This document shows, in pieces, positions 55,498-64,000 of a stretch of 64,000 bases of DNA. Location: the IMG/VR virus record IMGVR_UViG_3300021137_000001, positions 248,001 through 312,000 of that record; one strand, written 5' to 3'. How positions within the stretch are numbered: position 1 is the first letter of the stretch; every line of letters starts with the position of its first letter. The notes below the pieces were generated by a model. It did no database searches. It saw only the letters and a program-made list of their open reading frames with translations, and had not been told where the DNA came from. Made by a program: the position numbers and the translations under genes.

Positions 55498-56699
55498 TAT
55501 AGGAATCCTCCATAACCCAAATCTTTATCTTGTAGCAATCTACCTGCAGCAAACGAGTCAAGATTGAATCTATCATGCAGATTTTTACGACTGTATACTG
55601 GTTTTAATGTAATCGATATTGTACTTGTTGCAGGAACACGAGTCGATGTTGTTACTGATTTATATGCTGTTTTTGTTTTGTTTGCAACACTCATAGGAGT
55701 TTCGGGTGTAACTAATGATTCTGTTAACGTTGCTGTAGTAACTGGAATTTCTATATAATCTACCTCGTTAGGCAAAGTATGCGAAAAGTTACTAATTACA
55801 CACGGAATATGTGGGAAATAATGACTACCGTATCCATCTAAGAATACAATTGGTGGTGGGTTACCTGCATTAGCACCTTGTCCAAAAAACATTTTAGTGG
55901 CCGATCTAAAAAAGTATATTGCAGCAAGCAAGTATTTGCCCTCATCAATACCTTGAACTGTAAATTCACCAGAAATAGTAATATCGCTTACTTCACTGTT
56001 ATTATAGAATTGTTGCGGATAGTTACTATGAGTTGGAGTTGCTGGAGTGTAGTTTGCTACATGCGAAGTAGTAATGCTTGGTGTATAAGGGAAAATTACA
56101 CCGTTAGTATCTTTAAGTGGTGCCATAAGACTATTTGGATTAGGGCCAGTTTCTTTATAAAATATAGTCGACAGATCAGCTAAACTTATGCGAACTCTCC
56201 AATCATCGGATGCACCGGAGCTATCTCCTCCGGTTTGAGTTTGAAATGCAACTTGTGGTGCTGTCTTGGCATCACTTGCAGCTCCGCCATCCTTAAGTCC
56301 TGAAATTGCTTTACGTGCATCTGTTGATTCGTATGAGCCTGCATCTTTTGATGGATCATATCCGCCGTTAACTGATTCTTCTTGTCCGGGAATATATCCA
56401 CCACGTGTATCATATGTTCCAGCTAATGCACTGCCAGTTGTATAATCCTGACTAATTGCAGCCTGGCCGCCAATTGAATCAGTTCCTGTTAAATATGCAC
56501 TCGGGTTACTTGCATTGTATCCGCCACCACTACTTAATGCTTGCGCACCGTTATATCCGCCGGCAAAACTTGGCGCATACGCACCGGTATAGTTTTGCGG
56601 AGCATAAGGGTCGTAGCCACCATTGGTAGAATCAACTTGTCCGGGCACGTAACCACCTCTATTATCAAATATAGGTGCGTCTGTAGGATTTAGAGCCAT
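55497..56699 (-). CDS. tail tube initiator / baseplate-tube protein (gp48/gp54-like) with GGY-rich N-terminal extension
   Basis: GVIFPYTP.I, HSNY....Y, PPIVFL.GYG, PCVI.NFS..LP..VDYI; position next to LysM gene. Confidence 0.6.
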   Translation of the reverse strand: MALNPTDAPIFDNRGGYVPGQVDSTNGGYDPYAPQNYTGAYAPSFAGGYNGAQALSSGGGYNASNPSAYLTGTDSIGGQAAISQDYTTGSALAGTYDTRGGYIPGQEESVNGGYDPSKDAGSYESTDARKAISGLKDGGAASDAKTAPQVAFQTQTGGDSSGASDDWRVRISLADLSTIFYKETGPNPNSLMAPLKDTNGVIFPYTPSITTSHVANYTPATPTHSNYPQQFYNNSEVSDITISGEFTVQGIDEGKYLLAAIYFFRSATKMFFGQGANAGNPPPIVFLDGYGSHYFPHIPCVISNFSHTLPNEVDYIEIPVTTATLTESLVTPETPMSVANKTKTAYKSVTTSTRVPATSTISITLKPVYSRKNLHDRFNLDSFAAGRLLQDKDLGYGGFL

Positions 56700-56720
56700 A
56701 GTAAAACCTCTGTTATAGTG

Positions 56721-56726
56721 TATTTA
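56721..56726 (-). promoter_or_regulatory. late promoter TAAATA heading the structural operon
   Basis: TAAATA-CAC-TATAAC-AGAGG upstream of ATG 56699. Confidence 0.7.
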
Positions 56727-56771
56727 TTGTCGGAGAAATAGTAGCAGTTAAAGAATAACCAGATAAATAGG

Positions 56772-56800
56772 TTGTATAGCGCAATACTATATGTTATAAT
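56772..56800 (+). promoter_or_regulatory. sigma70-type promoter with extended -10
   Basis: TTGTAT (56772-77), 17-bp spacer, TG-n-TATAAT (56795-800). Confidence 0.75.
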
Positions 56801-56821
56801 AATTAAAAGGAATCTATTCAC

Positions 56822-56857
56822 ATCATAATAAGTAAAGTAAATTACCTAAATAGATAA
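56822..56857 (+). pseudogene. remnant 5' end of the gp55-like gene (..ISKVNYLNR*)
   Basis: Encodes KVNYLN, matching RVNYLN at the start of 57561; follows an orphan AAGGA. Confidence 0.6.
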
Positions 56858-56879
56858 ATATATAAAAGGTAATATAAAT

Positions 56880-57557
56880 ATGACAACTTATTATGTATAT
56901 GCATATATTCGTAGCAAAACTTCGCTAACTGCTAGCATCGGCACCCCGTATTATATAGGTAAAGGAATAGGGCAACGTGCGTTTACTAAACATAATTGTC
57001 CAGTTCCGATAGATAAAACAAATATTTTGTTTATTAAAGAAAATTTAACAGAAATTGACGCACATTTATTAGAAATACAGCTCATAGAACAATATGGGAG
57101 AAAAGATTTAGGCAACGGAATATTACATAATCAAACGAATGGCGGAGAAGGCATAAGCAATCCATCTAGCACTACTAGAGAAAAAATGGCGGCTGCTAAA
57201 AGAAATGAATCCGCTGATACTAGATTAAAACGATCAATTGCAGCAAAGAATAGAATCCGCACACCACTTAGCGATGAAACAAAACGTAAGATTAGCGAGG
57301 CTAATACAGGTAAAAAAAGAACAGACGATGCTAAATTAAAGCAGTCGGTTGCTAAGAAAGGTAGAACGTGGGAAGATATTTTTGGTATCGAAGAGGCAGC
57401 TAGAAGAAGGGATATACTTGCAAGTGACGAAGTTAAGTTAAAAATGAGTATAGCTGCGTGTAACAGAAGTGACGAAGGTGCCGCCAATATAGCTGAAGCA
57501 AATAGGAAAATTGGTATATTAAGAAAAGAAGCAAATAACAAATTAAAGGGTGTATAA
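56880..57557 (+). CDS. GIY-YIG homing endonuclease with NUMOD3-like repeats
   Basis: YYVYAY...PYYIGKG..R, E..LI..YGRKD, N.TNGGEG; SDETKRKIS repeats. Confidence 0.88.
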   Translation: MTTYYVYAYIRSKTSLTASIGTPYYIGKGIGQRAFTKHNCPVPIDKTNILFIKENLTEIDAHLLEIQLIEQYGRKDLGNGILHNQTNGGEGISNPSSTTREKMAAAKRNESADTRLKRSIAAKNRIRTPLSDETKRKISEANTGKKRTDDAKLKQSVAKKGRTWEDIFGIEEAARRRDILASDEVKLKMSIAACNRSDEGAANIAEANRKIGILRKEANNKLKGV

Positions 57558-57560
57558 TAT

Positions 57561-58460
57561 ATGGCAAGACGTGTGAACTATTTGAATAATAAAGACATTT
57601 TAAAAGAAATCGCTAAAAGTAAATTAACATATTGTAGTTTCATTAATAAAGATGTAACTATGTACGATGCTATTGTATTAAACGTAAGTGCAATTACTAA
57701 AAAATCCGTAGCAGAAGCCAGAGCAACAAGAGCAACAAGGCTTGCTAAAGAAGCACAAGAAGCTGAATTATTGCTCGGTAACAAACGCAAGTTAGATGAA
57801 TTTGCAATCCCAGTAGAAAATATCCCAGTAACAGACATTGTATTCCGTGTTATGACATGGGAACATATACCAATCGACGAAGTTAAACAGAAAAAATCCG
57901 ACGCTAAAGCACAAGAAGCGTACGACGAAGATTTGTTCGAAACTGAATACGATGAGCCTGCACCAGTTGTTAAAGTCAAAGGTGCTGTTAAGTACGTTAA
58001 ACTAAACTTTCCTCCTTTCTTTCATTATTCAGTAACCGAAGACTTAACTCCAATTGTTGTTGGTAAGAGTCACTGGAAAGGCGACTTTGAAACTGGCGGT
58101 TTTGTTAAAGATCATGGTAGCATGACGGCTAAGTTAGCTCATATGTTTGTTAAACTATGTGAACGCTATGCTACACGTAGTAACTGGCGTGGTTATACAT
58201 ACAATGACGAGATGCGTAGCCAAGCATTACTTCAATTAAGTCAAATTGGGCTACAGTTTGACGAAAGTAAATCAGACAATCCATTTGCTTATTATACAGC
58301 CGCAATTACAAACAGCTTTACTCGTGTATTAAACATCGAAAAGCGCAATCAAAATATTCGTGATGACATTTTAGAGATGAACAACTACGCACCAAGCTAT
58401 ACTCGACAGAATCAAGGCGGTAACTGGGGCGGTGGTGGTGGACACGGAGCCGACGAATAA
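57561..58460 (+). CDS. 55: late-transcription sigma factor, T4 gp55-like
   Basis: VNYLNNKD.L, NWRGYTY.DEM, FDESKSDNPFAYYT...NSF.R....EK; synteny with gp47/gp46. Confidence 0.9.
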   Translation: MARRVNYLNNKDILKEIAKSKLTYCSFINKDVTMYDAIVLNVSAITKKSVAEARATRATRLAKEAQEAELLLGNKRKLDEFAIPVENIPVTDIVFRVMTWEHIPIDEVKQKKSDAKAQEAYDEDLFETEYDEPAPVVKVKGAVKYVKLNFPPFFHYSVTEDLTPIVVGKSHWKGDFETGGFVKDHGSMTAKLAHMFVKLCERYATRSNWRGYTYNDEMRSQALLQLSQIGLQFDESKSDNPFAYYTAAITNSFTRVLNIEKRNQNIRDDILEMNNYAPSYTRQNQGGNWGGGGGHGADE

Positions 58461-58473
58461 CCGCAAATTATTT

Positions 58474-58525
58474 TATCTGCCAGTCGCCCATAACTAAATA
58501 CATTTACAGGGGATTGGCAGATATG
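58474..58525 (+). promoter_or_regulatory. late promoter inside SD/ATG-sequestering hairpin
   Basis: TATCTGCCAGTC-g-CCC pairs with GGG-GATTGGCAGATA; TAAATA at 58495-500 in the loop; ATG at 58523. Confidence 0.8.
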
Positions 58526-59185
58526 AAATACAAAAAAGATTACTATGGTTATGTATATGAATGGATAAATTCCACTAATAATATGAAATATATCGGATCG
58601 CATTACGGAGCAGTCGATGATTATTATAAAGGATCCGGCAAAGATTTTATGGTAGCATATAAAAATAACCCACAACACTTTACTATGAGAGTATTAGAAT
58701 ATGTTTCTGAAAACAATAAAAAATTAGTATTAGAAACAGAAAAAAAATGGCTTGATACAGTAGTAAATATTAAAGATGATCCAACATATTATAATCTCAA
58801 TAATGATGCGACAGGCGGATTTGGGTATTTAGATGAATCTCATATCGTTAAACGAGCAGAAACATTAAAGAAGAAACACGCTATCCACGGATTAAGTACC
58901 GAAGAAATACAATCATATAAGCAAAAAATACAAACCAGACTCGATAGAATAGCAACTACTGGGTTTACCGATAAAGAAAAAGAACAACATGCAAAATACG
59001 GAATTAAATTACAAGTCACCTTACCCTCAGGAGAAGTACGAATATATAATTCCATCGGGGCTGCCGAACGTGAGTTAAAACTTAACATTAAGTATGGATT
59101 AAAAATATGTGCCAAAAAACTTGACTTCAAAGGGTACATTCTAGTAAAATTAAATGAACCACTAATCGATTGTAGGAAAAAATGA
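58523..59185 (+). CDS. GIY-YIG (Seg-like) homing endonuclease
   Basis: GYVYEW.N..N.MKYIGSH, Y.GSG, E..WL, YYNLNN.A.GG; start moved to ATG 58523. Confidence 0.85.
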   Translation: MKYKKDYYGYVYEWINSTNNMKYIGSHYGAVDDYYKGSGKDFMVAYKNNPQHFTMRVLEYVSENNKKLVLETEKKWLDTVVNIKDDPTYYNLNNDATGGFGYLDESHIVKRAETLKKKHAIHGLSTEEIQSYKQKIQTRLDRIATTGFTDKEKEQHAKYGIKLQVTLPSGEVRIYNSIGAAERELKLNIKYGLKICAKKLDFKGYILVKLNEPLIDCRKK

Positions 59186-60195
59186 ATTTATTCAAAAAAG
59201 CTGCGGTATTTACAGATTTACATCTAGGACTAAAGTCAAATAGTACACAACATAATGAAGATTGCCTTGCGTACATTAAATGGTTTATTAGTAATGCAAA
59301 AAAAGAAGGGTGCGATGTTTGCTTTTTTCTTGGAGACTATCATAATAATCGAGCGGCAATTAATGTAGTCACGTTAAACTATAGCCTAACAGCGTTAGAG
59401 TTGTTGGGCAAAGCGTTTGACCGTGTTATCTTTATTCCGGGCAATCATGATTTATATTATCGTGACAAGCGTGATATACAATCTGCACAATGGGCAAAGC
59501 ATATTCCAAACATTGAGATTATTAATGATTTCTATCAAGAGGGTGATGTAAGCATTGTTCCGTGGCTAGTAGGAGATGATCATAAAAAGATACAAAAGAT
59601 CAATGCAAAGTATATGTTCGGGCACTTTGAGTTACCGGGCTATTATATGAATGCAATGGTGCAAATGCCAGAGCACGGTGAGATTAGACGTGAGGATTTT
59701 GGGCATATTGATCATGTGTACAGTGGGCATTTTCATAAACGTCAAACAGGTAAGAATATTACATATATTGGCAATGCGTTTCCACATAATTATGCAGATG
59801 CAGGTGATGATGAACGTGGTATGATGATACTTAACTGGGGAGAAGAGCCAACGTTTCATGCATGGCCTGATCAACCCAAGTATCGTGTATACACACTAAG
59901 CGACATTTTGCAAACTCCAGATACGTTGTTACAAAAAGGTATGCACTGTCGAGTAAACATCGACGTGGATATTTCATATGAAGAAGCAACATTTATTAAA
60001 GAAACTTTTGTAGGTACATATAATTTGCGTGAGCTTACATTAATTCCAGTAAAGCACACTGATATCGGCACAGATATTATGCTAGGCAATATTCAATTCG
60101 AAAGTATTGATACAATCGTGACAAGTCAACTAACAGCTATCAACAGTGAGCATTATAATCCAGCATTGTTATTAGACATCTATAGGAATTTATAA
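59182..60195 (+). CDS. 47: recombination endonuclease subunit, gp47/Mre11/SbcD-like
   Basis: DLH, GD, GNHD, GHFE, GHFH metallophosphoesterase motifs. Confidence 0.93.
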   Translation: MNLFKKAAVFTDLHLGLKSNSTQHNEDCLAYIKWFISNAKKEGCDVCFFLGDYHNNRAAINVVTLNYSLTALELLGKAFDRVIFIPGNHDLYYRDKRDIQSAQWAKHIPNIEIINDFYQEGDVSIVPWLVGDDHKKIQKINAKYMFGHFELPGYYMNAMVQMPEHGEIRREDFGHIDHVYSGHFHKRQTGKNITYIGNAFPHNYADAGDDERGMMILNWGEEPTFHAWPDQPKYRVYTLSDILQTPDTLLQKGMHCRVNIDVDISYEEATFIKETFVGTYNLRELTLIPVKHTDIGTDIMLGNIQFESIDTIVTSQLTAINSEHYNPALLLDIYRNL

Positions 60196-60231
60196 TTGTT
60201 TAAAATAAAAAATCTTACAGTTAACAGGTAA
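60196..60231 (+). pseudogene. remnant 5' end of gp46 (TTG-FKIKNLTVNR*)
   Basis: Matches MAFRIKNLTV at 60851; 14-bp exact repeat at 60205-18 and 60863-76; AGGAA 7 nt upstream. Confidence 0.7.
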
Positions 60232-60234
60232 ATG

Positions 60235-60242
60235 TATAAATA
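60235..60242 (+). promoter_or_regulatory. T4-consensus late promoter TATAAATA
   Basis: Exact consensus upstream of AGGAG and ATG 60261. Confidence 0.75.
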
Positions 60243-60260
60243 GTTATATAGGAGTAATAT

Positions 60261-60851
60261 ATGGCTAAAAGAAGAATATTTACAGAGGACGAATTGAATT
60301 TAATCATTGATTTACAACGGTCGGTTACTGAGATATGCTTACTAGTTAGTGCATCACATCCAACAATAACTAAGATCAGAAAAGAGGTAGGTATCGTTAC
60401 TATTAGAGGTAGGAGAGGTGGGTCTGTTGTTCCGTCTCAACGAAGAACTATTTACTGTGTATGCCAGAATGCGGCGTGTAAAAAAGAATTCGAATCAATA
60501 AAATCAACTCCTCGTAAATTTTGTAGCCACACGTGCCAACAACGAGCTGCAAATGTTGCTGCAAAAGGAATCGGTTCAAGAAAAATGCGTAACCCTAACA
60601 CTCCTGTATATAAAAAATATGCTAGAATAGTACATGGGATGAGTCATAAGATATATTTGTCAAACATAGCTATTATTAACCCTAATGGATATGTTAGAAC
60701 ATTATGCGGAGTTAAAGATGGATGGCAATTAGATCATATCATTCCTATTAAGGAATGTTTTGAAAGAAATATACCCCCAGAAGAGGCAGCTAGTATTAAT
60801 AATCTTAGGATGCTTCCATGGAAAGATAATTTAATGAGACAATATAAATAA
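60261..60851 (+). CDS. HNH homing endonuclease with N-terminal HTH-like and Cys-rich DNA-binding region
   Basis: C....C..EF......KFCS..CQ; C-terminal LDHIIP........NNL..L....N. Confidence 0.8.
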   Translation: MAKRRIFTEDELNLIIDLQRSVTEICLLVSASHPTITKIRKEVGIVTIRGRRGGSVVPSQRRTIYCVCQNAACKKEFESIKSTPRKFCSHTCQQRAANVAAKGIGSRKMRNPNTPVYKKYARIVHGMSHKIYLSNIAIINPNGYVRTLCGVKDGWQLDHIIPIKECFERNIPPEEAASINNLRMLPWKDNLMRQYK

Positions 60852-62623
60852 TGGCATTCCGTATAAAAAATCTTACCGTGAAAAATTTCATGAGTGTTGG
60901 TAATGCAACGCAAGCAGTGGACTTTGATCGCAATGATCTCACGTTAGTGCTTGGTGTCAATGTTGATTTAGGTGGTGACGACAGCGGCGCACGTAACGGC
61001 ACTGGTAAAACAACTATCATCAATGCGTTAAGCTACAGTTTGTTTGGGCAAGCGTTGACTAATATTAAACGTGATAACTTAATTAATAAAACTAATGGTA
61101 AGAACATGTTAGTCACAGTTGAGTTCGAACATAACGGGCAAGATTATAAGATTGAGCGTGGACGTAAGCCAAACGTAATGAAGTTTTACGTGGGTGATGA
61201 AGAAAAAGAAATTACAGACGAATCGCAAGGTGATAGCAGAGAAACGCAAGCTGAGATTGAGCGTATGTTAAGCATGAAGCATGATATGTTTAAACACATT
61301 GTTGCTCTTAACACGTACACTGAACCGTTCCTTAGTTTAAAGTCGGGTGATCAACGTGAGATCATCGAGCAGCTACTCGGTATTACTATGCTTAGTGAAA
61401 AGGCTGAGAATTTAAAAGAGTTGACTCGTGCTACAAAGGATGCAATTCAGCAAGAAGAATACAGTATTAAGGCGATTGCAGACGCAAACGGACGCATAAA
61501 AGAACAAATTGAGAGCTTAATTCGTCGACAAAATATGTGGACTACTAAGCACACAGATGATGCAGCAAAGTTAGAAAATGCGTTAGCAGAGTTGCATAAA
61601 ATTGATATTGAACAAGAACTTGCAGCACACACTGCGCTTACTGCATATAATCAACAGCGCAAAGACTTAGATGATTTGGGTAAAGCTATATTGCGTGGTG
61701 AGGCAGATATTGCTCGCGAACAAAAAACTATAGACAAAGTTACTAAAGAAATTGCCGATTTAGAAGCGCACACTTGCTATGCTTGCGGGCAACATTTTCA
61801 TGATGATAAACATGAGTCGGTATTAGCGGCTAAACGTGTTTCACTTGAAACCGCAACAAATCAATATTTGTCAGATCAATCACAGTTGCTTGCACTTACT
61901 GGTGCTAAGGCAGAAATTGGTGCCCTTGGTGCACAACCTCGAGTATATTATGATAAAGAAGCAGATGCATTCCATCATAAAGGTTCAATTACTAGTTTAG
62001 AAACACAGTTAGCAACTAAGAGTGCGGAAGTTGACCCATATGCTGAACAGATTGAAGAAATGACGCATACTGCTATGGCAGAAACTGATTTTACTACAAT
62101 GAATGAGCTCGTTAAGTTAAAGGAACATCAAGACTTCTTGTTAAAACTATTAACTAACAAAGATAGCTTTATCCGTAAGCGTATTATTGATCAGAACTTG
62201 TCGCATCTAAACGCAAGATTAAGTCAATACTTAGATCGCATCGGATTGCCACACACAGTAACGTTCTTAAATGATTTAAGCGTTGAAATTACAGAGCTTG
62301 GGCGCGAGTTAGACTTTGATAATTTATCACGTGGTGAACGTAATCGCTTGATCTTAAGTTTAAGCTGGGCGTTCCGTGATGTGTGGGAGAGTTTATACAA
62401 TCCGATTAACTTATTGTTTATTGATGAGCTTATTGATAGTGGCATGGACAGTAGCGGAGTTGAAAGTTCACTAGGCATACTTAAAAAGATGTCGCGTGAA
62501 CATGAGAAAAGTATTTGGCTTGTTTCGCACAAAGACGAACTTGCGGGTCGTGTAAACAATATCATGACTGTAACAAAAGAGAATGGGTTTACTACATACA
62601 GCACCGACGTTGAAGTAATTTAA
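60851..62623 (+). CDS. 46: recombination ATPase subunit, gp46/Rad50/SbcC-like
   Basis: NGTGKTT, coiled coil with CYAC zinc hook, LSRGE, LFIDE, SHK. Confidence 0.95.
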   Translation: MAFRIKNLTVKNFMSVGNATQAVDFDRNDLTLVLGVNVDLGGDDSGARNGTGKTTIINALSYSLFGQALTNIKRDNLINKTNGKNMLVTVEFEHNGQDYKIERGRKPNVMKFYVGDEEKEITDESQGDSRETQAEIERMLSMKHDMFKHIVALNTYTEPFLSLKSGDQREIIEQLLGITMLSEKAENLKELTRATKDAIQQEEYSIKAIADANGRIKEQIESLIRRQNMWTTKHTDDAAKLENALAELHKIDIEQELAAHTALTAYNQQRKDLDDLGKAILRGEADIAREQKTIDKVTKEIADLEAHTCYACGQHFHDDKHESVLAAKRVSLETATNQYLSDQSQLLALTGAKAEIGALGAQPRVYYDKEADAFHHKGSITSLETQLATKSAEVDPYAEQIEEMTHTAMAETDFTTMNELVKLKEHQDFLLKLLTNKDSFIRKRIIDQNLSHLNARLSQYLDRIGLPHTVTFLNDLSVEITELGRELDFDNLSRGERNRLILSLSWAFRDVWESLYNPINLLFIDELIDSGMDSSGVESSLGILKKMSREHEKSIWLVSHKDELAGRVNNIMTVTKENGFTTYSTDVEVI

Positions 62624-62647
62624 TTTTACCATCCACTACAGGGTGGT

Positions 62648-62661
62648 TAAATACATATAAC
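62648..62661 (+). promoter_or_regulatory. late promoter TAAATA-CA-TATAAC
   Basis: Upstream of AAGGAG and ATG 62679; preceded by small hairpin 62628-47. Confidence 0.65.
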
Positions 62662-62678
62662 AACAAGGAGAAGTAAAC

Positions 62679-62864
62679 ATGGCAATTCATGATGATATTT
62701 TAGCAGCAGTAGAATTATACGTTTCAGAATCAGAAAAATTTGAAGTTAAAGGTGTTAAAGCTGCAGCGGCACGTGCTCGCGGTGCATTAGGCGATTTAGG
62801 TAAGTTAACTAAAGCTCGTCGTGCAGAAATTCAAACCAAAAAGAACGAACTGTCCGCTAAGTAA
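62679..62864 (+). CDS. histone H1-like Hc1-family small basic protein
   Basis: KG.KAAAARAR.AL..L.KL.K.RR.EIQ..K pattern. Confidence 0.7.
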   Translation: MAIHDDILAAVELYVSESEKFEVKGVKAAAARARGALGDLGKLTKARRAEIQTKKNELSAK

Positions 62865-62873
62865 TAACGGAAA

Positions 62874-62958
62874 ATGCTGACATTTTGAATAAATAGTAGT
62901 GTAGTTCGCGGGTGTAGGAACCCCAACTACTCTAACATTGTAAAGGAATGTCAGCATG
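62874..62958 (+). promoter_or_regulatory. structured leader: 11-bp outer stem, late promoter and inner hairpin
   Basis: ATGCTGACATT (62874-84) is the reverse complement of AATGTCAGCAT (62947-57); TAAATA 62890-95; GTAGTT..GGGT/ACCC..AACTAC 62901-30. Confidence 0.8.
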
Positions 62959-63534
62959 AATATTTATTACGTATACCAGTACCTTAGAGAAAAGGATTCG
63001 TCTACTGCTCTAGCAGGTACACCATACTATATAGGAAAAGGTAAGAACAACCGAGCATATATAGGACACAATAATAGAATACCTTCAAATAAAGAATATA
63101 TTCAAATTATTAAAGATAATTTAACTGAACAAGAAGCAATGGACCTTGAAATTATGCTAATTAAAAAATATGGTCGTAAAGATTTAGTAACAGGTATTTT
63201 AATAAATCTTTCAAACGGCGGCGAAGGAGCAAGCGGATCTGTTCGTTCGCAAGAGCACAAGACACGTATATCTCAAGCACAAACAGGAAAAATTGTTTCA
63301 GATTCAACAAGAGAAAAATTAAGTAAGGCATTATCAGGTAAAAAACGATCAGATATTGCTAAGTTTAATATTAGCAAAGCACACATAGGTCAAGTTCCTT
63401 GGAATAAAAACATACAAATGACAGAAGAGTGGAAGGCAAAACGCCCTTGGCATAGTTGTGATATTTGTGGTATTCAATCCCAAAACCTTACTAATATTAA
63501 AAGATTTCACAATAGCAATTGTAAAAATAAATAG
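62956..63534 (+). CDS. GIY-YIG homing endonuclease with NUMOD3-like repeats (same subfamily as 56880)
   Basis: YYVYQY...PYYIGKG..R, KYGRKD...GIL.N.SNGGEG; C-terminal CDIC..HNSNC. Confidence 0.88.
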   Translation: MNIYYVYQYLREKDSSTALAGTPYYIGKGKNNRAYIGHNNRIPSNKEYIQIIKDNLTEQEAMDLEIMLIKKYGRKDLVTGILINLSNGGEGASGSVRSQEHKTRISQAQTGKIVSDSTREKLSKALSGKKRSDIAKFNISKAHIGQVPWNKNIQMTEEWKAKRPWHSCDICGIQSQNLTNIKRFHNSNCKNK

Positions 63535-63538
63535 CATT

Positions 63539-63991
63539 ATGGCATATGATAATCCCTGGATCTATAATGGTACAACTTTTGATTCAGGGGATATCGGTGA
63601 ATACTACGGCTTCATTTATAGAATAACTAATATCACTAACGGACACGATTATGTGGGCCGCAAATATTTTAAAACTATTAAAAAAAGACCACCACTAAAA
63701 GGTAAGAAGAACAAACGTTTAGAAACAATTGAAACTGATTGGAAAGACTATTGGGGTTCATCAAATCGTTTAGTAGCAGATATACTAGCACTAGGTAAAG
63801 AACAGTTTACCCGTGAAATTATACATTTATGTAAAAGTCGCGGTGAAACTAACTATATGGAAGCGCATTATCAATTTAAAGAAGAAGTACTGTTAAGGGA
63901 AGATAACTATAATGGTATTATACAACTTAAACTAGGTAAAAACTCCGTTAAAGATGTAAAAATTAATAAATCAGTTGACCAACGACACTAA
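63539..63991 (+). CDS. stand-alone GIY-YIG catalytic-domain protein (Seg-like, no DNA-binding tail)
   Basis: GFIYRITN....YVGRK, DWKDYWGSS, F.REII.LC, Y.E...QF...VL, YN; start moved to ATG 63539. Confidence 0.8.
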   Translation: MAYDNPWIYNGTTFDSGDIGEYYGFIYRITNITNGHDYVGRKYFKTIKKRPPLKGKKNKRLETIETDWKDYWGSSNRLVADILALGKEQFTREIIHLCKSRGETNYMEAHYQFKEEVLLREDNYNGIIQLKLGKNSVKDVKINKSVDQRH

Positions 63992-64000
63992 ACGTAATAC

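Follow-up and report, generated by a model that had tools for sequence, protein, structure and literature searches.

A free-standing HNH-like nuclease gene and a probable replacement 5' end of gp46 in an uncultured jumbo phage

The gp47-gp46 junction and its nuclease gene

The 64-kb stretch of DNA analysed here (the window) comprises bases 248001-312000 of the 329,321-bp genome, with terminal repeats, of an uncultured phage from a freshwater metagenome, and carries a gene for a predicted HNH nuclease at the junction between gp47 and gp46, with gp46 5' sequence on both sides of it. On the plus strand, gp47 (59182-60195), which encodes the Mre11/SbcD-like nuclease subunit (Pfam Metallophos, E value 5.5e-9) and to which relatives align end to end, terminates with TAA at 60193-60195 and is followed directly by a short open reading frame (ORF) consisting of TTG, 10 codons and TAA (60196-60231; MFKIKNLTVNR*), hereafter the gp46 5' stub. 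The last gp47 codons, AGG AAT, contain the Shine-Dalgarno-like stretch AGGAA (60184-60188, plus strand), which, as read from the sequence, would serve the native gp46 start; AGG is retained at this position in the relatives closest to the window that lack the HNH gene (L008 and L009; TAT AGG CAY YTA TAA), and AGA or other codons occupy it in the remaining HNH-free relatives. Bases 60196-60224 of the stub are gp46-derived and cassette sequence begins at 60225, with the break lying after GTT AA at 60224, inside gp46 codon 10 (codon 9 plus two bases). The left end of the cassette (60225-60260, plus strand) holds an in-frame TAA (60229-60231), a perfect copy of the motif TATAAATA (60235-60242) and AGGAG (60250-60254), and leads into an HNH-like ORF of 196 amino acids (aa; 60261-60851, plus strand) with a helix-turn-helix (HTH) domain, a C4 zinc ribbon and a C-terminal HNH domain. 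There gp46 opens anew with MAFRIKNLTVKN, its ATG and the HNH stop sharing one base (TAATG). This replacement 5' end (60851-60882, plus strand) consists of the new ATG that overlaps the HNH stop, one added Ala codon and the remaining codons as far as the break; it runs uninterrupted into an intact 590-aa ORF for the Rad50/SbcC-like ATPase subunit (60851-62623, plus strand; Pfam AAA_23 and SMC_N), which aligns to relatives over its full length. A preliminary description of this DNA, made from the sequence alone, had reported the AGGAA, the TTG mini-ORF, the HNH gene, the gp46 restart and a perfect motif after the remnant, all of which we found where it had placed them.

A repeat search confirmed the proposed 14-nucleotide (nt) exact core shared by the stub and the gp46 restart (60205-60218 and 60863-60876), which lies within a direct repeat identical at 18 of 20 positions (60205-60224 versus 60863-60882) and whose 14-mer occurs just twice in the 64-kb window. 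When the 65-nt gp47-HNH spacer was shuffled 3000 times with its dinucleotide composition preserved, 18/20 was never attained and a 14-nt run arose once, so that the worry that the similarity might prove non-significant under shuffling did not materialise. The differences ACA/ACC, GTT/GTG and TTT/TTC between stub and restart are synonymous, as had been claimed for the flanks of the core, but AAA/CGT changes K to R and an Ala codon has been added, so that the claim stood for the former and not for the latter.

The host gene is not split into two separately translated functional parts, as the 11 residues of the stub are encoded again by full-length gp46. Nor is the HNH gene embedded in an intron or intein: gp46 is complete from its new ATG, the HNH gene is a separate ORF with its own ribosome-binding site, and an Rfam scan of 56000-64000 gave no family match at E values up to 1, which argues against an intron.

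At the protein level, the 196-aa product matches PHROG 5104 (E value 5e-20) and PHROG 1271, 'HNH endonuclease' (E value 2.8e-6), and eight residues (C68, C73, C88, C92, D158, H159, N181 and N190) are invariant in 50 homologues. In an AlphaFold2 model with a predicted local distance difference test score (pLDDT) of 86, three helices form an N-terminal domain that is followed by a zinc ribbon and a C-terminal domain; the structural matches of residues 1-45 are HTH domains. When the whole model was compared with PDB and Swiss-Prot using Foldseek, only N-terminal HTH matches with E values above 0.05 were obtained, because the model consists of three loosely linked domains (predicted template modelling score, pTM, 0.48); a profile search of PDB sequences gave a zinc-ribbon resemblance to eS31 only (E value 0.0014). 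A near-identity DNA search of cultured phages produced no match, and the closest cultured gp46 proteins, those of PA5oct-group jumbo phages, are less than 50% identical. Since no cultured phage carries this HNH protein at 80% coverage or more, no laboratory system was found.

Site fidelity, transfer and decay in related loci

Searching with gp46 yielded 80 related loci, and the gp47|gp46 junction was found uninterrupted in 31 loci, occupied by other inserts in 33, by a distinct full-length HNH gene in 25 and by a partial HNH gene in 16. In the 31 distinct HNH-free uninterrupted loci, gp46 begins immediately after the gp47 stop or shares bases with it (TAATG, ATGA or TAA TTG), and gp46 is consequently present in one copy only; relatives free of the nuclease gene but showing both copies, which would have spoken against an insertion, were thus not encountered in any of the 31. 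The junctions of the HNH-free loci L008, L009, L032 and L033 read TAA TTG TTT AAA AT(A/C) AAA, the same sequence as the stub in its native place, which identifies the mini-ORF as the original gp46 start. The 26 nt behind the start codon of the stub all recur at the authentic 5' end of gp46 in L004 and L005, the closest relatives (26/26), whereas the working gp46 copy shares 21 of 26 positions with them. Beyond GTT AA (60224), native alleles read A AAC TTT ATG AGY and the window reads C AGG TAA. The proposal that the HNH gene had inserted inside the 5' end of gp46, replaced its start and left the old start behind is borne out by more than 150 related loci.

The junction as such is a general hotspot of insertions, but the 33 loci with unrelated inserts (0.7-4.3 kb) contain no gp46 stub, which is a specific feature of the HNH insertions. 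About a third of the related loci carry such inserts exactly between the gp47 stop and the gp46 start (L003, L006, L007, L013-L015, L017, L021-L026, L030, L031 and others), and several of the unrelated inserted genes reuse the overlapping start position.

Grouped at 90% identity, homologues of the HNH protein fall into at least 303 clusters, nearly all of them about 197 aa long and unnamed, with a few named McrA by the Joint Genome Institute (JGI). Loci found with the HNH protein comprised 17 on viral contigs and 70 from metagenomes, and 4 further proteins were added by contig look-up. Site fidelity is high: almost wherever the flank is visible, the HNH gene lies directly upstream of gp46, with gp47 upstream and usually adjacent, and this adjacency spans phages whose gp46 is 25-100% identical to that of the window, including marine phages in which the identity is just 25-30%. 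Scoring of the stub at the protein level separated HNH loci from the controls with other inserts, as 20 of the 25 distinct full-length HNH loci exceed all 33 control loci (Mann-Whitney p = 2e-9). An alternative nucleotide-level score, comparing the stub with the working copy within each locus, was rejected: synonymous changes set the copies apart, and the score therefore discriminated poorly between HNH loci and controls.

The architecture of these loci is conserved. The break always falls just before or within the conserved K-N-F codons, a stop follows 1-4 codons past it, usually as part of a GGTAAATAC or TATAAATAC motif, and the new gp46 start always coincides with, or lies within, the end of the HNH frame, the two overlapping by up to 17 nt. 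In L133 another gene lies between gp47 and the HNH gene, and the stub is still found directly upstream of the latter. The same structure recurs in independent assemblies of other samples (L002, L082, L083, L084 and L107). Both the second-codon insertion and GTG for Val are enriched in HNH-linked gp46 copies. In one HNH-linked allele (L099:3090-3135), the conserved Val of LTVKNF next to the break is replaced by Cys (TGT), possibly a target-site escape change.

The cassette has moved laterally in the recent past. A gapless 3.4-kb alignment between the window and L084 contains 394 mismatches, none of which falls within 60184-60894 (711 nt, plus strand), and the flanks of this identical tract, which includes the last 12 nt of gp47 (60184-60195), are about 12% diverged. 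The tract marks the extent of the recently moved unit. L107 represents a third background (gp46 86% identical by tblastn) with the same cassette and no differences over 60202-60894. The phylogenies of the nuclease and its host gene are discordant: pairwise identities of HNH and gp46 are uncorrelated (rho 0.11, 253 locus pairs), and discordant pairs occur both ways (HNH 100% with gp46 84%; HNH 49% with gp46 69%). The element is furthermore polymorphic for presence and absence in two lake metagenomes, where contigs join 60193 or 60197 straight to 60863 beside HNH-carrying contigs; the HNH-free junction reached a summed depth of about 22 in one run and 12 in the other, HNH-carrying contigs 12 and 8 and the flanks 30-90, figures that, being drawn from contigs, indicate presence only.

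A series of decay stages is also preserved. The HNH gene is truncated to its last 22-48 codons between gp47 and gp46 in L098, L162, L165-L168 and L171-L175, and about 80 nt of it remain in L061, where another inserted gene precedes them; in L077 the spacer, 32 nt long, resembles by eye the HNH 3' end of L061. Survival of the 3' remnant is plausibly explained by its holding the sequence just upstream of the restarted gp46. Independent internal HNH deletions in L171 (1495-1545), L168 and L098 all spare the final 30-47 codons of the gene. The one in L171 joins the gp46 stub without a gap to the IKECFEK motif, which suggests that this deletion went through a short shared AAA-rich stretch.

The gp55 locus, the promoter motif and neighbouring genes

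The preliminary description had attributed the structure at gp46 to the same event as at gp55, the gene for the late sigma factor (57561-58460). Upstream of gp55 (56822-57563, plus strand) we found a decayed stub (56822-56857), a GIY-YIG gene (56880-57557, plus strand; PHROG 314 homing endonuclease) and the restarted ATG at 57561. The relative L180, which lacks the nuclease gene and has a 98% identical gp55, reads AAAAGGAATCTATTCAC ATG GCA CGT AAA GTC AAC TAT TTA AAT AAT AAA; the window has the same 17 nt and then ATC ATA ATA AGT AAA GTA AAT TAC CTA AAT AGA TAA (56822-56857). The native Shine-Dalgarno stretch in front of the stub is thus shared letter for letter, the stub encodes K V N Y L N and then closes with AGA TAA, and its start codon has been lost (ATC). 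A direct-repeat search around gp55 found no duplicate, and the stub was revealed by frame translation and the L180 comparison. Since this comparison exposes a stub at gp55, an unrelated nuclease family uses the same solution; the parallel therefore holds as the same kind of event and not, given the different nuclease family, as literally the same one. Both the HNH and the GIY-YIG cassette open with AG(A/G) TAA AT(A/G) TATAAA, a stop in the host frame and then the late-promoter motif.

The motif TATAAATA is the T4-type late-promoter consensus. It occurs at 56873, 60235 and 60843 in the window (3 copies versus 12.1 expected) and 34 times genome-wide (about 57 expected). Although under-represented, the motif clusters 0-37 nt upstream of ORF starts in the genome; 14 of the 23 plus-strand copies sit 0-35 nt upstream of an ORF start, and at least eight of the gene-proximal copies precede HNH- or GIY-YIG-like nuclease genes. 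L094, whose HNH protein is 42% identical, shares with the window a 15-nt stretch spanning TATAAATA, and a GGTAAATAC- or TATAAATAC-like motif is kept at the same place in other HNH loci. The placement of TATAAATA, its sharing with L094 and the presence of a gp55 homologue support a T4-type late promoter, and TATAAATA would then be used as such by the phage. Four of these ORFs have their ATG just 6 nt after TATAAATA; should the motif be a T4-type late promoter, their late transcripts would be near-leaderless. A 78-aa ORF outside the window (G000:C1:99896-100129) that begins with MANHESMVKGTTVYVKNDNVEQAMRKFKK stands behind TATAAATA; its product may be ribosomal protein bS21. An RNA hairpin that would hide the HNH ribosome-binding site, a device of some T4 nuclease genes, was looked for, and the predicted fold was no stronger than those of shuffled sequences (z = -1.09).

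In all, at least five nuclease-like genes lie in the 8-kb stretch that includes this locus. A second GIY-YIG gene (58514-59185) lies between gp55 and gp47. It is absent from L084 (window 58461-59185), which has a 60-nt spacer instead (L084:783-843). The spacer after the gp55 stop of the window contains GCAAATTATTTTA, which resembles the gp47 start of L084 and is followed by AAC TAA ATA C; this possible 5' end of gp47 in front of the GIY-YIG gene is a candidate third stub, whose GCAAATT..ATTT match to L084 is too short to call. Downstream of gp46, two further GIY-YIG-like ORFs (62956-63534 and 63458-63991) overlap in their frames by about 77 nt.

Interpretation, alternatives and known systems

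We interpret 60225-60882, with a probability of roughly 0.85, as a free-standing homing-endonuclease cassette that lies inside the gp46 coding sequence rather than between genes and that brings a portable replacement 5' end. Its four parts would be a stop in the gp46 frame that closes the stranded old start as an 11-codon ORF; a T4-type late-promoter motif with a ribosome-binding site; the gene for a predicted site-specific 196-aa HNH nuclease with HTH and zinc-ribbon DNA-binding modules; and a surrogate gp46 start, the ATG overlapping the HNH stop plus about 10 codons. Because the cassette carries this surrogate start, the essential gp46 stays a single intact ORF. During mixed infection with an HNH-free relative, the nuclease would cut or nick the uninterrupted gp47/gp46 junction close to the conserved codons 8-12 of gp46, and repair would then copy the cassette from the HNH-carrying genome, using the gp47 3' end and the stub as left homology arm and gp46 from about codon 10 as right arm; a cut near the break is suggested by the break position (60224) and the short co-conversion flanks. 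The carrier would probably be immune, as the left copy splits the site and the right copy is altered (ACC GTG for ACA GTT, extra codon). Allele differences provide a suggestive lead only in this direction: Val is encoded by GTG in 23 of 46 HNH-linked and 5 of 67 HNH-free alleles, and Ser by TCN in 17 of 46 and 1 of 67, both counts being confounded by relatedness. Eventually the HNH gene would decay by internal deletions, its last codons persisting as the gp46 translation-start region.

The most serious alternative is that the stub is a working control element, either an operator for HNH autorepression or an 11-codon relay handing ribosomes from gp47 via HNH to gp46. The left half-site adjoins the late promoter, the stub ending 10 nt before TATAAATA, so the nuclease could bind it and repress its own transcription, much as the operator of I-TevI, which overlaps a late promoter, is identical to its homing site at 15 of 20 positions (PMC2988022). 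A working stub would also fit the coupling of the gp46 start to the gp47 stop in HNH-free relatives (TAATG, ATGA, TAA TTG), a frame that in most lineages is open with an in-frame stop 1-4 codons past the break, and 6-nt insertions in L099 and L105 that preserve this frame. However, stubs have changed at residues that genuine gp46 keeps constant (K to S in L012, V to G in L085, K to L in L089) and are decayed or fused with the HNH frame in L103, L121, L128 and L130, which makes a peptide function unlikely; the gp55 stub has no start codon (ATC), a 296-aa subfamily occupies the same junction without a stub, the RNA fold near the ribosome-binding site was unremarkable, and retention of the stub is already accounted for by its role as left homology arm. 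We therefore regard a control function as unlikely.

An origin of the duplication anew at each insertion, by target-site duplication at a wide staggered cut or by microhomology-mediated repair and not as cassette-borne sequence, seems improbable. Left and right copies do often share lineage-specific residues (L094, L105, L085 and L101), as a fresh duplication would produce, but both copies lie within one identical tract in three diverged backgrounds with the same differences between them, which indicates that they moved as a unit; moreover, up to 17 nt of the right copy lie within the HNH frame (L093, L096), this copy has one codon more than the left one, and we know of no HNH enzyme that makes a 29-nt stagger. 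Even less probable is that the HNH protein is a fixed accessory nuclease of the gp46/gp47 complex rather than a selfish one. This would explain why its gene always lies between the subunit genes, a position that is invariant across very distant phages, yet the gene is absent from 64 of roughly 80 closest relatives, exists in many truncated copies and is polymorphic within single lake samples, and the cassette is 100% identical across backgrounds differing by about 12%, with HNH identity uncorrelated with gp46 identity. As for a chance match or an assembly artefact, the region is AT-rich and the repeat just 20 nt long, but the shuffled sequences reached the observed values in 0 and 1 of 3000 cases, the structure recurs in independent assemblies from other samples and the stub matches the HNH-free junction of relatives, so that this explanation is barely conceivable.

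Several points weigh against our interpretation of a homing cassette with a replacement 5' end. In several loci stub and restart share lineage-specific residues (L094 FKKI, L105 IHVKNL, L085 NIT), which requires either same-lineage donors or later homogenisation with HNH-free relatives; judging from such sequences, the working copy does not always appear visibly foreign. The stub's open frame with an in-frame stop in most lineages could mean that it has a use of its own, and a fragment in L170 that lies upstream of a gp47-like gene is a possible exception to site fidelity. A 296-aa subfamily whose C-terminal nuclease domain is the same and whose N-terminal part is longer and different occupies this junction, too, and lacks a stub (L095, L097, L139, L140, L142, L145, L146, L148 and L155; L155 has a 6-codon stub). 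The Pfam HNH match is below the gathering cut-off (E value 0.03; 14.9 bits versus 21.4), and the structure most similar to residues 112-196, that of the Gme HNH nicking endonuclease 4h9d, matches them modestly (Z 5.5); motif, profile and fold thus give the HNH assignment good support that nevertheless stays short of the Pfam cut-off. Finally, we infer the nuclease activity, the cut site, the immunity and the timing of expression.

The prevailing view is that homing endonuclease genes persist in coding sequence only by means of introns or inteins and otherwise stay intergenic. If our interpretation is correct, a free-standing nuclease gene can enter an essential ORF and mend it with the first ten codons and the new start that it carries, which would add the conserved 5' ends of essential genes to the sites available to such elements and would account for odd 'duplicated starts' and short orphan ORFs, both of which annotation pipelines will get wrong. 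A decayed element could stay locked in as the new translation start region of its host gene. Two unrelated nuclease families show 5'-end replacement in this one genome, HNH at gp46 and GIY-YIG at gp55. A wider proposal, that 5'-end replacement is a general, hitherto undescribed route of phage homing endonuclease genes into coding sequence, that the half-site acts as autorepression operator and that the 3' end has become an obligatory gp46 start region, is tentative and, taken as a whole, doubtful; if it were true, the phage would be unable to lose the element fully even after decay of the nuclease, because the 3' end of the nuclease gene would be the obligatory translation start region of an essential gene. 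Lake and marine jumbo and T4-like phages hold many members of the HNH family, which, being polymorphic within single samples as well, offers a natural marker for recombination and gene flow in uncultured phages. Its target here is the Mre11/Rad50-like pair, with which T4-type phages are thought to process the breaks on which homing depends, and gp46/gp47 are listed as possible homing exonucleases (PMC2988022).

The mob and seg genes of T4-like phages are the familiar free-standing homing endonuclease genes (reviewed by Edgell et al. 2010, PMC2988022). Like them, the HNH gene is a small nuclease gene beside an essential, conserved gene of DNA metabolism, is sporadic among relatives, has a late-promoter motif and start/stop overlaps with its neighbours, and spreads with co-conversion of flanks. 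The T4 examples in that review are intergenic, whereas here the insertion lies within the target ORF and the cassette mends the interrupted gene. Within a limited literature search, gene-end duplications are described neither in the review ('duplicat' is absent from its text) nor in a survey of phage nuclease genes (PMC10448857). Genes annotated 'hypothetical' in the T4-like phages Sinorhizobium phiM12 (L176), Providencia PSTRCR_121 (L177) and Serratia X20 (L178) encode proteins of the same size class with a related nuclease domain, the C-terminal domain being 33-51% identical over query residues 58-194, depending on the cultured phage. All three are located downstream of gp18, the tail sheath gene; in X20 and PSTRCR_121 the next gene is gp19, which encodes the tail tube, and the X20 gene has TATAAATA upstream. 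Their N-terminal DNA-binding parts and target differ from those of the gp46-linked protein, and they are plainly intergenic and have no downstream-gene stub; together they probably represent an undescribed homing endonuclease family.

With respect to the stub, I-TevI is the relevant case, as it is autorepressed via an operator resembling its homing site (PMC2988022). The junction described here likewise has a partial copy of the homing site beside the nuclease late promoter, but the site is a predicted one and insertion geometry alone explains the copy. With respect to the target gene, the cassette resembles nrdA-mobE of Aeh1 and mobA of T4 in combining a free-standing nuclease gene within coding sequence with a device that keeps host function. 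These gene-splitting elements, Aeh1 nrdA-mobE and T4 mobA/gene 60, reportedly yield two polypeptides or depend on ribosomal bypassing, and gp46 differs in being one ordinary ORF because the lost codons are supplied again. Both the 'genes in pieces' of Aeh1 nrdA-mobE and the T4 mobA/gene 60 bypass cassette are cited in PMC2988022.

The closest precedent that we found is provided by the mobile ORFs (mORFs) with a duplicated gene end in fungal mitochondria, at atp6 of Allomyces macrogynus and at atp6, atp9, cox2 and nad3 of Glomus (Beaudet et al. 2013, PMC3630166). There, as at gp46, an endonuclease ORF in a coding gene brings a foreign gene end that becomes the expressed one, the native end is left as an unused remnant resembling close relatives, and the inserted copy differs mainly by synonymous changes. 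The mORFs replace the 3' end, often as an in-frame fusion, encode LAGLIDADG or GIY-YIG enzymes and reside in organelle genomes, whereas the gp46 cassette replaces the 5' end with a new start in a stop/start overlap, encodes an HNH protein (GIY-YIG at gp55), duplicates about 30 nt only and resides in a virulent jumbo phage. The window thus shares with mORFs a gene-end duplicate that takes over and a relative-like remnant, and departs from them in that the ORF lies upstream, so that no 3' end is replaced. By analogy, the gp46 cassette would be the 5' mirror image of an mORF, an element that works alike with unrelated proteins.

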